Source: Entomortierella parvispora E1425 (Eukaryota > Fungi > Mortierellomycota). Taken from it: a stretch of DNA of 64,000 bases. Positions 25,956 to 32,508 of the stretch are shown piece after piece (position 1 is the stretch's first letter; the number at the start of each line of letters is the position of its first letter). The notes beneath the pieces were generated by a model. The model had not been told where the DNA came from and searched no databases. It saw only the letters and a program-made list of their open reading frames with translations. Where the stretch lies: positions 744,001 through 808,000 of the forward strand of contig BQFW01000011.1 of assembly GCA_020891255.1 (NCBI GenBank), read 5' to 3'. Position numbers and translations under genes: made by a program.

Positions 25956-26443
25956 GGCAAAGCAATGGTGCCATCCCAACAGCATGCGGACGACCACTGC
26001 TTGCATCGCAGTCACAACGCGCGCTCTTGCCACAAAGAGGGAAGATCTCTCCTCTTCTCCTCCTCTTCCCCATCATCCCCATTCCTCCCATTTCTTCTTC
26101 TTCTTCTTCTTCCCACAGCCACTCGTCCTCTCATCTCTGTCGCTGCTCATCCTCATCTTGACCATCGGGCCTTGTAAGCAACTGCCCCTCACAAAGGGCC
26201 AACTGACGAACATGATCTTCCCCACTCCATCCGAGGGGTCTCATGTGTTTCTCTTCTTTTTGCTCTCTTGCATACCACGCATATGCTGTTCTCCCTTTGC
26301 TCAAACCGCGTATTGTTGTTCTTTGCTCTAGAATCAAGCGAGGTTTGCTCTCCCTTTCTCGTCGTCTGTTCCCACGCAGACCTCCACTTTCTTTCTGTCC
26401 TCTCCCAAGAGGACTTCATAGTCACTCCTACCCCCCCCCCCCC

Positions 26444-29400
26444 ATGGAGGACAGCGCCGAGAACTTGCCGCTGGACTTGATTCTGGATAGGGCCGCAGCA
26501 GCCTTCAAGGACGCGGATTTTTTCGAGTCCGGGCTCCTGTTCTGGACTGCGGTCCTCGATCCCCGCTCCGCCGACGATTCTGCTCAAGCCCTCGCCCTCG
26601 CCTTGGACCTCGAGCAGGAACTGGGTCTGGATGTACAAGCAGAGGATCCTATTGAACTCTCATACCCACCCCAGCCTGCTCACCACCACCTCAGGATCCA
26701 TGCAGGCACCATATCTGCCTTCCAGACCCATGTGGTCACCGCACTTTGTTATCTGGCGCGTCATATCAATGTTCGGATCGACATTCTTCCCTCGGGTCAG
26801 GATACCCTTACATCCATGGGTCCTCCTCAACGCGTCTATGGATCGTTGACCGATGCGCAAAAGGAAACCTACCAAGATCTACTCGCCATCATCCTCGCCA
26901 CGTCCACGGAACTCACCCTCAGACAACAAGACGAAAACGAAGGTCCTCAAGAGCAGCTGGCCTATGATCGTCAACTGGAAGTTCAGCAGAATGGGATTCT
27001 CGGAAACGAGGCCACCAGAGCCTCATGGCAGGCCATCTTGCCTCAGAAGCATACCCCTCACAGTTTACCCCGCTTCTTTTCCTTTCTCAACTCGAGTTCT
27101 TGCACGGTCGCTGGATGTTCTGTCCCCAGGAATGAGCAGGACATTGATGCCCTCCATCAGGTTGGATTCAACCTTGTCATCTCTCTTATGAAAGAGTCGC
27201 CTCTGCCACCATCCTGGTTCCACAAGGATCAGGTTCCAAAATCCATCAAGAACGCCTATGTACCGATCGAAAACAGAAAGGCTCCTTCCTTTCCAGAGGT
27301 CTTTGAGGTTCTCATGGGTTGGTGTGTTCGGACTGGCAACTTGGCAAGCGAGGATGACGAGGGACCCTTTTTTGATCATCAGAGAGCGACTCTTATCCAT
27401 TGCGGCGGCGGTAAAGGCCGAGCTGGCATCGTCTTGGCTGCCCATTTGATTCGATTTGGACTGGTCGGACATGAGCGACGAGGATACTGTCGGGAGTGCA
27501 TACGTCAGGAAAACGTCCATCCTTTTGATCTGGAGCAATTCCGGAGAGGGCTTGGAGACCAGGAGACTGCAGCTTCCAGCTTGCCAGACGGCTGTTTGTC
27601 TGCCTCTATTGACGGAAACGAGAGCGAAGATGACGACGCTGAGGATGAAGAGCCATTGGAGTACGACTTACCAGGAGTCATTGTCGCGAGGAAACAGAGT
27701 CAATGCTTGAACCGATTCGAACCAATGATGCCCGCCAAGGATGCAATGGTACACCTAAGGAACCTTCGACCTGGAAGTATAGAGACTACGGAGCAGGAAA
27801 AGTCAATCAAAGCGTATAGCGACTGGCTCTGGAAGCGCTCTTCCTTAAGAGCCTCTGCAAAAGCAAAGTCTGCAAAGACAACAGCAGCAACTTCATCTGA
27901 ACATCAGGATCTCAACAGCACGGCACCCAAGCCCAATGGTGCATCTGATCGGACCAAGGGCAAGAAGAACAAGACCAAGGACAATACACCGAAACATCAG
28001 CCGGCCACACATGGCGATGGCGAGGAAGACAACTTATCGGACGATGACTTTGACCGAGGTCGAAAATCAGGGAAAAAGGGCAAAAAAGGAAAACAAATGC
28101 CACATGAGGAACCCAAGATCTTTGTACCTCCACCAGCAGACAAGATCATTCGCATCCCTGGAAGTGGCAAAGGATCTCACCACCAACACCATCTTGTGGT
28201 CCAGCACAATATGAGGGCACGACAGCTCCAACGGGGTCAAAAATCCAAAAAGGGAGGCGGCAACAACAACAAAAATTCAAAGGAACGGCCTTCATTCTCG
28301 GTCACTGGATCTCCTCTGGACACTGCACCCAAACTGGTCATTCTTACTGGACTTCCTGGAAGCGGCAAAAGTCATGTTGTCACCACACTTCTTCAGGAAT
28401 ACCCCGAGCATTTTGTCCGCATCTCTCAGGATGAGCTGGGATCGCGCGCAGTTTGCGAACGATTATTGGCACAAAGTATGAGGCATCAGCAGCAATCTCT
28501 GGCGATCCGAGGACCCAAGAAGGCCTTGCCAATGACAATTTTCGTGGACCGGTGTAACCCGACCATGGCTCAGCGCAAGGAATGGTACGAGGTTGCGTTC
28601 CAGCCGGATGAGGCAGCCATGGTGTGGTTCTCGCTCGGTTTGGAAAAATGTGTGGAAAGGGTCGACTCTAGGGAGGGCCATCCAACAGTCGCACCAGGGA
28701 TGGGGGGCAAGGTTGTCCGCAGTTTTGCTAAAGGATTCGAGTTCCCCAACCTTTCCAAGGAGAACAGTTGGTGCAAGACGCTCGTGGAAGTGGGCGACGA
28801 TGATGGAAGTGACCAGCTGTTGGATATCTTTAGAGCGTTTGCACAAACCATTCCCGGATCATCCAAGACTGCATCACCCAGCGGCGAGGCAACCGTGATC
28901 AAGGCTCGACCGGCGTTTATTCCCGCCAGAGTTTTGCAAAGAAAGAACATTGGCCCAGGAGCTGGTCTCTTTGAATCTGGACCAAGCTCTGGACATTCAA
29001 GTTCTAACCTTCCGCTTTCAGGGGGCATGGAGAGCGTTGAGGAAGAGTCGGATGAGGAAGATGAGGAAGAGGAAGCTGACGAGGAAGAATCTGAGGGCAG
29101 TGAAGATGAGCAGGAGAGCGATGAGCAGCCAAGCCCGGATGAAGCTGACGAAACGATGACCCCTCCCGAGACAACAGCAGAACTAGAACCAGCACCGCCT
29201 TCGACGATATCCATCACCAAGGCTCTCCAGTTTGCTGCCCTTACAGGACAACGACCTGCGGTCAAGAAACCAGCCAAAGGAAGTTGGAACGGTACCGCTG
29301 CAACGAGCTCTTCTGATTCAAAAACCACAGAAAGCGGCGCTGCCTCGCCCAAGGGTGTGTCGTTCGCGCCTCAGCTCTCGACTTTTGACCGACCTCTCCA

Positions 29401-30538
29401 AAAGTTCCCCAGGACTCCTCATCTTTTCGATCCTCTGACGATTTTGGAGAGCTGGCAACAAGAGACGGGTCATGCTCTTCAAGCGCCCCCAGCCGAGGAT
29501 GTCTATGTGCCTGACGGTCATGGAGGGCGAAGCATGGCAATTAGTCGATCGGATCTGTTACTACCGGCCTCGGCTCTTCGCCAGGTCTTTGCGCCCAAGG
29601 CCCATCAGGTTTTGACGGTGGAGGAAAAGATGGACGGTGCCAACATTGGCTTCAGTGTGTTGCATTTCAAAGGCGTGATGGGATTTGCAGGCAGTCGAGG
29701 CGAAAATGGCTCCACCACACCCGGGCCTCCTCCCAAAATCCGAGTCCAGAACCGAAACCACTTTGTGCACCCGGATGACCATTGGCAGTTCAAGAAACTG
29801 AACAGCTGGCTTGAGAATCATCGGGAGGATATCCTGTGGCTTTGCGAAGGTGGCTGGCGCTATGGCAACCGGAAAAAGAGCAGGAGATCCAATGGCGAAG
29901 GCGAAGAGGACGAAGAGGAAGACGAAGAGACTTTGACGGACCACGACGCTGAGGAATCGTCCGAGGAAGCGGTCGAGGTAGAAGAAGGTGTCGATGATGG
30001 TGATTGGGAGGACGAGGAGGAGAGCGAGTACGTGGACGAAGATACGGTATTGCAGGACGGTATGGCTCCCTATGTCCTCTATGGTGAATGGCTCTACGCG
30101 AAACATTCCGTCCAGTACACCGGTCTGAGGTCCTGGTTCATCCCATTTGATCTCTTTGATGTCAAGACTGGCACCTTTGTCTCCAGACAGCTCTTCCACC
30201 GCGCCATTGGTCAGACAAAGCTCGTCCAGATCCCGACTCTCACCATTCCAAAGGAGGTCTATGGGGATGTCGAAAAGACGCTTTTGTGGACACTTCAGAA
30301 GCTGCACAGTCGCTCAATTTTGATGAGACCACCCAAGGAGGATGTGGAGATGGGTGGTGGTGAAGACAAGAAGAAGGCAGCAGCGCAGTCGGGCACCCGG
30401 GTTGAAGGCCTTTATTTCCGTATCGACCAGGGTGACAGACTACTCACCCGTTGTAAAGTCGTCCGGCCGGATTTCATTGCTGGCGAGGAGAGATGGGGCA
30501 CCAAAGAGCAAGTCGCGAACCAAATCCTGTACAATTAG
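26444..30538 (+). CDS. Multidomain RNA end-repair protein: DSP/PTP-fold phosphatase + polynucleotide kinase + RNA ligase ('Swiss-army-knife' type), intronless
   Basis: IHCGGGKGRAG (HCX5R); GLPGSGKS Walker A with SQD and VDRCN; KFPRTPHL, EEKMDG (motif I), LYGEW (III), FIPFDLFD (IIIa), VEGLYFR (IV), RCKVVRPDF (V). Confidence 0.9.
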   Translation: MEDSAENLPLDLILDRAAAAFKDADFFESGLLFWTAVLDPRSADDSAQALALALDLEQELGLDVQAEDPIELSYPPQPAHHHLRIHAGTISAFQTHVVTALCYLARHINVRIDILPSGQDTLTSMGPPQRVYGSLTDAQKETYQDLLAIILATSTELTLRQQDENEGPQEQLAYDRQLEVQQNGILGNEATRASWQAILPQKHTPHSLPRFFSFLNSSSCTVAGCSVPRNEQDIDALHQVGFNLVISLMKESPLPPSWFHKDQVPKSIKNAYVPIENRKAPSFPEVFEVLMGWCVRTGNLASEDDEGPFFDHQRATLIHCGGGKGRAGIVLAAHLIRFGLVGHERRGYCRECIRQENVHPFDLEQFRRGLGDQETAASSLPDGCLSASIDGNESEDDDAEDEEPLEYDLPGVIVARKQSQCLNRFEPMMPAKDAMVHLRNLRPGSIETTEQEKSIKAYSDWLWKRSSLRASAKAKSAKTTAATSSEHQDLNSTAPKPNGASDRTKGKKNKTKDNTPKHQPATHGDGEEDNLSDDDFDRGRKSGKKGKKGKQMPHEEPKIFVPPPADKIIRIPGSGKGSHHQHHLVVQHNMRARQLQRGQKSKKGGGNNNKNSKERPSFSVTGSPLDTAPKLVILTGLPGSGKSHVVTTLLQEYPEHFVRISQDELGSRAVCERLLAQSMRHQQQSLAIRGPKKALPMTIFVDRCNPTMAQRKEWYEVAFQPDEAAMVWFSLGLEKCVERVDSREGHPTVAPGMGGKVVRSFAKGFEFPNLSKENSWCKTLVEVGDDDGSDQLLDIFRAFAQTIPGSSKTASPSGEATVIKARPAFIPARVLQRKNIGPGAGLFESGPSSGHSSSNLPLSGGMESVEEESDEEDEEEEADEEESEGSEDEQESDEQPSPDEADETMTPPETTAELEPAPPSTISITKALQFAALTGQRPAVKKPAKGSWNGTAATSSSDSKTTESGAASPKGVSFAPQLSTFDRPLQKFPRTPHLFDPLTILESWQQETGHALQAPPAEDVYVPDGHGGRSMAISRSDLLLPASALRQVFAPKAHQVLTVEEKMDGANIGFSVLHFKGVMGFAGSRGENGSTTPGPPPKIRVQNRNHFVHPDDHWQFKKLNSWLENHREDILWLCEGGWRYGNRKKSRRSNGEGEEDEEEDEETLTDHDAEESSEEAVEVEEGVDDGDWEDEEESEYVDEDTVLQDGMAPYVLYGEWLYAKHSVQYTGLRSWFIPFDLFDVKTGTFVSRQLFHRAIGQTKLVQIPTLTIPKEVYGDVEKTLLWTLQKLHSRSILMRPPKEDVEMGGGEDKKKAAAQSGTRVEGLYFRIDQGDRLLTRCKVVRPDFIAGEERWGTKEQVANQILYN

Positions 30539-30787: not shown

Positions 30788-32508
30788 TTACGGCTGCTCC
30801 TGTTGGGTGAAATGTGTAAAAAAAGGGAACATGAGGTCAGTCAAGAGTAAAACAGATTGACCTTTTTTCCCAGTGAAGGAGGACGAGAGAGTATTTTAAA
30901 AAAAATCCTTACCGATTCCCAGAGGGCGGCCATGCCCATGCCAGTACCAATACACATGGTGGTGCAGCCAATCTTGGCATGCTGTCGTTTCATCTCGGGC
31001 AACAAGGTTGCAATCTGGCGGGCGCCTGTGCAGCCCAAGGGATGGCCCATGGCGATGGCACCTCCAACGGGGTTCACCTTCTTGATATCCAAGCCCAATT
31101 TCTCGATGGTGTACACGGCCTGGGAGGCAAAGGCCTCGTTCAGCTCAATGATATCAATGTCCTTGATCTCAATTCCAGCCTTCTTACAAACGGCGGGAAT
31201 AGCATAGGCAGGTCCAACACCCATGATCCTGGCAGGGCATCCGATGACAGCCGAGGTGATGTACTTGCCCAAGATGGGGAGTCCCAAGCGATGAGCGGTT
31301 TTGCGCTTCATCAACAAGACAGCAGCAGCTCCATCCGAGACCTGGGAGGCGTTTCCAGCGGTGGTCGAGCCTCCAAAGGCGGGTCTCAATTTCGAAAGGG
31401 ACTCTTCCGTGGTGCCGTCTCGAATACCTTCATCCTTGGAGATGGTGACCTCCTGTGGATTGTCGTCCTTGTCCAGGACAGTGGTTTTGACGGGGACAAT
31501 CTCGCTGTCAAATTTGCCCTCCTTCTGTGCCTTGGCGGCCTTCTGGAAGGAGAGAGCTGCAAAGGCGTCCTGCTTCTTGCGGTCAATGTTGAAATCCTTG
31601 GCTACATTCTCTGAGGTGATTCTGGCGAGAGGAAGAGGAGGAATAGAAAGGAGAAGAGGAGGAGAGGAAAGAAAGGTTAATTTTTTCAGGAGTGAAACGA
31701 CCAAACTACTCCTGAGGCAGAAGGGAAAAAAAAAATCACACGTTAATTTACCCCATCGGCATCTGGCAATCGGCAGCCGCTTGACTGGCCTCTGGGATCT
31801 TTTGCGAGACCTGGGCGGCCATGGCGGAGGGGCCGTACCCCATGGTCATGGACTCGACACCGGCGCCAATGCCGATGTCGATCAAGCCGGTCTGGATATG
31901 GGTTGCAATGTTGACTACAGCTTGGAGACCTGAGGAGCACTGACGGTTTGTGGTGTAGATCGAGGTCGATTCGGGGTATCCTGCATAGAGAGCAGCCATG
32001 CGTGAGACGGTGGCCCCTCCAGCGGCCTGCAGGACATTTCCGACACAGATGTCGTTCACGATCGAGGGATCGATCTTGGTCCGGTCCTTGATGGCAATCA
32101 AGACTGCAGCCAAAAGGTCCTCGCTGTTGTTGAGTTTTCAAGGAAGAGTGAGGACGAAAGAAGGGAGGGAGAGAAGACAGAAGAGGTAGAGATGGTCACA
32201 GGTGAGTTACGGATGCAGACAGAAGTATGAAAGGCGCCAGTGCGCACTGGCCACTTGCATGCGCACGCCGAAAAAAGTCCGCCCGTCTCTGATCCTGTCT
32301 TTTTTCCCACGAGAAAGTTATTGCTCAAGGGGTGGCAGACTTACGGAACAGTGTCCTTGAAGCCTCCTTTCTTGCCTCGGGTCATGGCCGTTCTCACGGC
32401 ATCGACAATGACCACATCATCGGGCGATTTGACGCCGATCTTTGTGGGAATCTCGGAATGCCCCACATGGAGGTGGGACGAGATCTGAGAGAGACGGTTG
32501 GAAGCCAT
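30788..32508 (-). CDS. POT1: 3-ketoacyl-CoA thiolase (peroxisomal type), multi-exon
   Basis: PTS2-like RLSQISSHL N-terminus; TNRQCSSGLQ, GAGVESMT, NASQVSDGAAA, ELNEAFASQ, VNPVGGAIAMGHPLGCTGARQ, CIGTGMG. Confidence 0.93.

Follow-up and report, generated by a model that had tools for sequence, protein, structure and literature searches.

A 64,000-nucleotide stretch of the genome of the fungus Entomortierella parvispora E1425 (contig BQFW01000011.1, positions 744,001 to 808,000; hereafter the window) carries a gene that sequence comparison places in the Swiss Army Knife (SAK) RNA-repair family as its Mortierellaceae ortholog. Its product combines a cysteine phosphatase, a P-loop kinase, and a putative ATP-dependent RNA ligase in one polypeptide, and we favor, with moderate confidence, the view that this polypeptide first heals RNA cut by metal-independent ribonucleases and then seals it. 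Pfam already records the family and the role predicted for it; what is new here is a member with lineage-specific features, namely a lost 2H domain, a novel N-terminal module, long linkers, and inserts.

Domain architecture

Pfam recognizes three domains in the protein, all above their gathering cut-offs. These bear out an initial annotation of the gene, made from the letters alone, which had called a phosphatase, a kinase, and a ligase in that order; every motif it listed was recovered at exactly the position it gave. The features of the gene, with their positions in the window and strand, are as follows.

26444..30538 (+): whole gene, Mortierellaceae SAK ortholog; single exon; product identical to P0001; single-exon syntenic ortholog; nonsynonymous divergence (dN) far below the saturated synonymous divergence (dS)
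26444..27067 (+): N-terminal module, residues 1-208; predicted all-helical, lineage-restricted, with no recognizable 2H domain
27068..27838 (+): PTP-SAK cysteine phosphatase, residues 209-465 (PF22784 over residues 209-346, E 4.9e-28, 98.5 bits against a cut-off of 27; alignment A4), split by a lineage-specific insert at residues 341-420 (nucleotides 27464-27703)
27272..27274 (+): Asn277, where DUSP23-like phosphatases have their general-acid Asp; column N78 of A4, invariant
27398-27421 (+): HCGGGKGR, phosphatase P-loop (Cys320 nucleophile, Arg326); invariant in 17 SAK sequences
27839..28318 (+): basic low-complexity linker, residues 466-625, containing a conserved His-rich/basic motif at residues 556-600 (nucleotides 28109-28243)
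28319..28828 (+): P-loop polynucleotide-kinase-like domain, residues 626-795, with GLPGSGKS, SQDE (Asp663), and DRCN (Arg703); AAA_33 over residues 631-767, E 4.2e-11; PDB 9drz and 9d8a
28349-28372 (+): GLPGSGKS, kinase
28424-28432 (+): SQD, kinase
28547-28558 (+): DRCN, kinase
28829..29383 (+): acidic/low-complexity linker, residues 796-980 (conservation profile, dN)
29384..30535 (+): predicted ATP-dependent RNA ligase nucleotidyltransferase domain, residues 981-1364 (PF09414 in two stretches, E 2.9e-19; invariants of alignment A3; AlphaFold2 model; fold comparison)
29402-29425 (+): KFPRTPHL, ligase
29621-29638 (+): EEKMDG, ligase motif I
30083-30091 (+): GEW, ligase motif III
30146-30154 (+): FDL, ligase motif IIIa
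30404-30412 (+): EGL, ligase motif IV
30449-30466 (+): RCKVVR, ligase motif V

A Mortierellaceae member of the SAK family

The SAK RNA-repair family was reportedly predicted computationally by Burroughs and Aravind in 2016. The initial annotation had drawn a link to that work, and Pfam's own name for PF22784, "Swiss Army Knife protein, DSP-PTPase phosphatase domain", is taken from those proteins. Because the PF22784 model also matches generic phosphatases, in 8 of 14 prokaryotic control genomes, a match to it is not by itself specific to SAK proteins; the assignment draws in addition on the fusion of the phosphatase with a kinase and a PF09414 ligase in a single polypeptide that is collinear with other SAK proteins. 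Basidiomycota, Ascomycota, and one green alga have more distant homologs, about 875-1100 residues long. In Coprinellus and Aureobasidium the domains run in the order 2H-SAK, PTP-SAK, kinase, and ligase, and BLASTP aligns the window protein collinearly with the Coprinellus protein (P0036) at 29-42% identity over the phosphatase (in two pieces), the kinase, and the ligase (again in two pieces). The Chlamydomonas eustigma protein has the order PTP-SAK, ligase, and kinase, without a 2H domain. Alignments across Mortierellaceae, Dikarya, and the green alga show the key motifs to be invariant.

A profile of 17 SAK phosphatase domains searched against the PDB matched 25xa (E 6e-32), DUSP23 (E 6.9e-27), and SsoPTP (E 4.9e-18). 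The strength of the DUSP23 match, the label "Dual specificity protein phosphatase 23" that public records attach to some orthologs, and the breadth of the PF22784 model would all suit an ordinary protein phosphatase that regulates the attached kinase-ligase or something unrelated. However, the phosphatase has stayed fused to a kinase and an RNA ligase from fungi to a green alga through a change of domain order, and the missing general acid described below argues against phosphoprotein substrates, which makes this alternative very improbable. Within the Mortierellaceae, the phosphatase is distinguished by an insert of about 80 residues (341-420) between the P-loop helix and a conserved RPGSIET helix.

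The Dikarya orthologs keep the 2H domain with both of its HxT motifs, and Pfam finds no match to 2H-SAK (PF22547) in the window protein or in 34 Mortierellaceae orthologs. Because it is also missing from the Chlamydomonas member, the 2H domain appears to be accessory to SAK.

One coding frame

The initial annotation had described a single intronless open reading frame encoding one polypeptide. The open frame runs from 26243 to 30538 (+) and comprises 1431 codons; the methionine at 26444, the second in the frame (Met68), opens a gene of 1364 codons plus a stop, the product of which is identical letter for letter to the public gene call P0001. As the orthologs all start within about 25 residues of a conserved DLxLxRAAAAF motif that lies after this methionine (alignment A1), 26444 is likely to be the true start.

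Across the Mortierellaceae genera, 34 further proteins are collinear with the window protein at 44-73% identity, with 97-100% query coverage in all but three; the domain cores are well conserved and the linkers poorly. The closest ortholog, from Gryganskiella cystojenkinii (73% identity), is a syntenic single-exon gene call of 4143 nucleotides, and that of Entomortierella beljakovae is 58% identical. In a codon-wise comparison of the window and Gryganskiella genes, dN is 0.02-0.43 in each segment, including the charged linkers and inserts, against saturation at synonymous sites; the dN/dS ratios that can be estimated are 0.03-0.06. Low dN in all segments against saturated dS thus points to a frame that is coding throughout and under purifying selection. 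The collinear orthologs, the single-exon Gryganskiella call, and the low dN lend indirect support to the single polypeptide. The gene is single-copy, in that PF09414 matches no other gene in the genome. Downstream lies a thiolase gene with introns on the opposite strand (window 30841-32141, -), and the same neighbor, likewise on the opposite strand, stands beside the Gryganskiella ortholog, so that local synteny is conserved.

The kinase domain and the preceding linker

The best solved relatives of the kinase domain are 9drz (E 5.4e-13) and RazKIN, 9d8a (E 2e-12), both stand-alone kinases of Mucorales. The motifs GLPGSGKS, (N/S)QD(D/E)(L/M)GSR, DRCN, and HPT are common to SAK and these proteins: beside the Walker A motif GLPGSGKS, the SQDELGSR of the window protein aligns with the NQDDLGSR/NQDDMGSR of 9drz/9d8a. 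The Mucorales kinases phosphorylate 5'-OH RNA and DNA in vitro and have been shown experimentally to replace the Trl1 kinase in yeast tRNA splicing (PMC11571804). Asp36 of MciKIN, reported to be essential (PMC11571804), is presumed to be the Asp of the QD motif. BLASTP found no similarity between the SAK kinase and the Trl1 kinase of the same genome (E 0.57).

Within the basic linker between phosphatase and kinase, residues 556-600 (window 28109-28243) form a motif, FVPPPADKIIKIPGS..HHQHHLVVQHNxRARQLQRGQKSKK, that is 73-92% identical across Mortierellaceae (dN 0.08) and has no counterpart in the Dikarya SAK proteins. A nuclear localization signal and a metal- or RNA-binding element are possible roles for it. 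A seeming second P-loop in the linker (IPGSGKGS, residues 571-578) is not conserved in most orthologs and was set aside as a chance resemblance.

The ligase domain

The ligase domain contains these covalent nucleotidyltransferase motifs: K1062 in motif I, E1215 in III, F1235 and D1236 in IIIa, E1321-G-L in IV, and K1338 in V. Among 19 SAK ligase domains (alignment A3), the R-T-x-H-L core of FPRTPHL, E-K-x-D-G with Lys1062, E1215, D1236, V-E-G of motif IV, and K-x-V-R of motif V are invariant, and F1235 is not. Relative to Dikarya, the Mortierellaceae domain has four lineage-specific inserts, of which an acidic one at residues 1141-1195 (nucleotides 29864-30028) is the largest.

A sequence profile of the domain gave nothing significant against the PDB, and only fold comparison placed it. 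The AlphaFold2 model has a mean predicted local distance difference test score (pLDDT) of 72, with the core mostly above 84; it superimposes on NgrRnl with Z 14.0 (root-mean-square deviation 3.4 A over 196 residues), and on T4 Rnl2, REL1, and T4 Rnl1 with Z 13.8, 13.4, and 13.4. The model thus predicts an RNA-ligase nucleotidyltransferase fold. The matches span only the nucleotidyltransferase parts of the solved chains (NgrRnl 135-339, T4 Rnl2 1-233), and the SAK protein ends about 25 residues past motif V, with neither the C-terminal domain of Rnl2 nor the N-terminal oligonucleotide/oligosaccharide-binding (OB) domain of Rnl5. By its modeled architecture the ligase fits neither clade, and since the top Z scores are tied, we assign it to neither.

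The same comparison bears on a role in DNA strand-break repair, in which a nuclear, PNKP-like 3'-phosphatase/5'-kinase with a nick-sealing ligase would act on nicks with 3'-phosphate and 5'-OH ends. Such a role could draw on the in vitro activity of the related Mucorales kinase on DNA 5'-OH ends (PMC11571804), on Lys-rich linker stretches that resemble nuclear localization signals in sequence, and on the loss, in the Mortierellaceae lineage, of a 2H domain relevant only to RNA. Yet the ligase belongs to PF09414, its model scores Z 13-14 against RNA ligases and 9-10 against DNA ligases, it is devoid of the OB domain that DNA ligases need, and the Dikarya orthologs retain a 2H domain with both HxT motifs; we hold a DNA role to be improbable.

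Proposed mechanism and the reaction of the phosphatase

The presence of a 5'-OH kinase points to breaks produced by transesterifying ribonucleases, with a 2',3'-cyclic or 3'-phosphate on the other fragment; a 3'-OH (and 2'-OH) end is what characterized PF09414-type ligases require. By parsimony, the phosphatase would be the supplier of this 3'-OH end, because it is the only domain left in the conserved core, and the retention of the core trio in Chlamydomonas eustigma despite its changed order leads us to argue that the three domains work together. In the scheme that we infer for the substrates and the order of the steps, the cysteine phosphatase, acting through Cys320 and Arg326, would strip the 3'- or 2'-terminal phosphate to leave a 2'-OH,3'-OH end, and might also handle the 2',3'-cyclic phosphate; the RazKIN-like P-loop kinase would phosphorylate the 5'-OH end; and the Rnl2/Rnl5-like nucleotidyltransferase domain, adenylylated at Lys1062, would join the 3'-OH to the 5'-phosphate. 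Sealing of this kind would produce an ordinary junction that carries no 2'-phosphate, so that Tpt1 would not be required. Besides Trl1 and RtcB, this fungus would then have in SAK a third way of joining RNA, conceivably one directed against ribotoxins.

Several points weigh against this scheme. Asn277 aligns with the "PD" motif Asp of DUSP23, 25xa, and ShufPTP, and Asn is invariant at this general-acid position in all 17 SAK sequences aligned. The initial annotation had taken the catalytic motifs to be intact, which holds for the Cys-X5-Arg loop (HCX5R, H319-C320-GGGKG-R326) and fails for the general acid. Classical cysteine phosphatases that lose this Asp hydrolyze alcohol and phenol phosphomonoesters far more slowly. 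We know of no cysteine phosphatase that acts on RNA 3' ends, and the RNA-directed members Mce1, BVP, and DUSP11 act on 5' polyphosphates. As a 2H cyclic phosphodiesterase is lacking here, a 2',3'-cyclic end would need another opener, which could be the phosphatase itself or the cyclic phosphodiesterase (CPD) domain of Trl1, or the substrates might already be monoesters. As to the ligase, the C-terminal accessory domain of T4 Rnl2 is needed for its RNA-adenylylation step, and the SAK ligase is without one. Finally, the literature searched yielded no biochemical study of any SAK protein, in keeping with the initial annotation, which knew of none.

The invariant Asn277 is the main reason for retaining an alternative in which SAK is still an RNA enzyme, but its phosphatase trims 5'-tri- or diphosphate RNA to a ligase-ready 5'-monophosphate in the manner of DUSP11/PIR1 and baculovirus BVP, the kinase serves 5'-OH ends, and 3' healing falls to other proteins such as the CPD domain of Trl1. 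RNA triphosphatases of the cysteine-phosphatase superfamily work without a general-acid Asp, as their leaving group needs no protonation, and its absence is typical of them; the missing 2H domain and a Trl1 with a CPD domain in the same genome also fit. On the other hand, HCGGGKGR and the domain as a whole are closest to the DUSP23/SsoPTP type and not to the triphosphatase clade with its signature HCTHGxNRTG, which is not among the matches listed (60 of 170) from the PDB profile search. Moreover, a kinase and a ligase without 3' healing could not repair the usual breaks with 5'-OH and 2',3'-cyclic phosphate ends. We consider this 5'-end alternative unlikely and continue to favor 3' healing by the phosphatase, which Asn277 does not disprove, but which would then involve an unusual chemistry or substrate.

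A more ambitious proposal, which we put forward only tentatively, is that the SAK phosphatase is a new type of RNA 3'-end healer: a cysteine phosphatase that dispenses with a general acid and, in the 2H-less Mortierellaceae form, turns 2',3'-cyclic or 3'/2'-phosphate ends into diols unaided, as part of a Tpt1-independent anti-ribotoxin pathway parallel to Trl1 and RtcB.

The N-terminal module

For the N-terminal 208 residues, the initial annotation had suggested either a degenerate 2H domain or something novel, and the evidence runs against the first and in favor of the second. In seven orthologs the region has no Pfam match, and its comparison by hhalign with the Dikarya 2H-SAK region gives E 0.07-0.16 with a probability below 1%; the sole match, itself nonsignificant, pairs a short conserved segment, PSGQDTLTSLGPPQRYYxSL, with the region of the second HxT motif. 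AlphaFold2 predicts helices and no strands for residues 1-208 (pLDDT 67, predicted template modeling score 0.69), and Foldseek finds nothing for this model in the PDB (best E 1.3). A degenerate 2H domain was rejected as unsupported on these grounds. Nor did hhalign (E 0.89) support a correspondence to the helical stretch downstream of the Dikarya 2H domain. We take the region to be a lineage-restricted helical module, and it is doubtful that any part of it is an eroded 2H remnant.

When 1.84 billion representative proteins were searched exhaustively with a profile of this module, seven matches came back, six of which are, by sequence, Mortierellaceae-type SAK proteins or fragments (two, P0033 and P0155, have named sources). 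The seventh, P0156, is a 122-residue fragment from an SRA assembly (SRR5687767_6390731) that shares the first ~65 residues of the module (E 6e-11) and has an A+T-rich-looking composition. This match suggests that relatives may exist outside the sequenced Mortierellaceae.

Other RNA-joining and RNA-end genes in the genome

A canonical Trl1 gene, with the ligase-kinase-CPD arrangement, lies elsewhere in the genome (contig C3, ~375.1-378.5 kb). The Pfam trio PF09511, PF08303, and PF08302 matches this gene in full and the window protein not at all, which upholds the claim of the initial annotation that the SAK enzyme is separate from Trl1. An RtcB gene is present at contig C15:2474600-2475780 (-) (PF01139, E 8e-57), so that Trl1, RtcB, and the SAK ligase occur together in this fungus. 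Two further genes are related to SAK domains.

Contig C2:76250-76582 (locus L007, ~1240-2355) (+): ortholog of the Mucorales-type stand-alone RNA 5'-OH kinase; its exon 2 by itself matches RazKIN residues 31-172 (E 1.7e-25)
Contig C7:44293-44739 (locus L008, 1441-2221) (-): stand-alone 2H-SAK gene (PF22547, E 3e-21); both HxT motifs present, first exon signal-peptide-like

The stand-alone kinase on contig C2 coexists with a full trifunctional Trl1; hence its family is not simply a split-off Trl1 kinase. Relatives of the stand-alone 2H-SAK protein on contig C7 are about 220 residues long with signal-peptide-like starts, and occur in Mortierellaceae (often two per genome), Mucorales, Umbelopsis, and Kickxellales, as well as in chytrids, green algae, and a Halobacteriovorax. 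From these starts, the family probably consists of secreted 2H phosphoesterases. We considered whether the C7 protein might supply the missing 2H activity to SAK in trans; this is unlikely, since its signal-peptide-like start makes it probably a secreted protein and not a partner of SAK. The cyclic phosphodiesterase of tRNA splicing is missing in Mucorales (PMC11571804), and the Mucorales members of this 2H family might be candidates for it, although secretion argues against this.

Comparison with known systems

Most work on heal-and-seal RNA repair concerns phages and bacteria; in eukaryotes it is known chiefly from tRNA splicing and the unfolded-protein response. If the proposed mechanism is true, SAK would be a dedicated eukaryotic RNA-repair enzyme using a phosphatase fold not known for RNA 3' ends. 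The co-occurrence of Trl1, RtcB, and SAK makes this fungus a natural system in which to ask what a third RNA-joining pathway is for, and its 2H-less, Asn-bearing variant sharpens the question of which reaction the phosphatase carries out.

The three catalytic domains of the window protein, and its catalytic residues, including the Asn at the general-acid position, are also those of the SAK proteins from Dikarya and green algae; it has the phosphatase-kinase-ligase order in common with the Dikarya members. It differs from the Dikarya proteins in carrying the lineage-specific helical module in place of the 2H domain and in its length, 1364 residues against about 875, the excess being made up of the long charged linkers, the 80-residue phosphatase insert, and the four ligase inserts. 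Within the domains, MciKIN and RazKIN are the closest solved and characterized relatives of the kinase, but these are stand-alone proteins of about 165-210 residues assigned to tRNA splicing, whereas the SAK kinase is embedded in a far longer chain. The ligase has the predicted fold and motifs I, III, IIIa, IV, and V in common with the Rnl2/Rnl5-type enzymes T4 Rnl2, Trypanosoma brucei REL1, and Naegleria NgrRnl, at about 15% identity and without the accessory domain of either type.

At the level of the whole pathway, Trl1 embodies a similar logic, with healing and sealing on one polypeptide by a 5'-OH kinase and an ATP-dependent ligase. However, its Rnl1-like ligase, GTP-dependent kinase, and 2H cyclic phosphodiesterase belong to PF09511, PF08303, and PF08302, as against PF09414, AAA_33, and PF22784 in SAK; the domain order is different; and the Trl1 junction carries a 2'-phosphate that the SAK junction is predicted not to have. 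The systems closest in their steps are T4 Pnkp with Rnl1/Rnl2 and the bacterial Pnkp-Hen1, in which the same 3' dephosphorylation, 5' phosphorylation, and ligation are used against anticodon nucleases. In those systems the phosphatase is of the haloacid dehalogenase (DxDxT) or calcineurin-like type and the activities reside on separate proteins, whereas the window SAK protein joins a cysteine phosphatase to its kinase and ligase in one chain.

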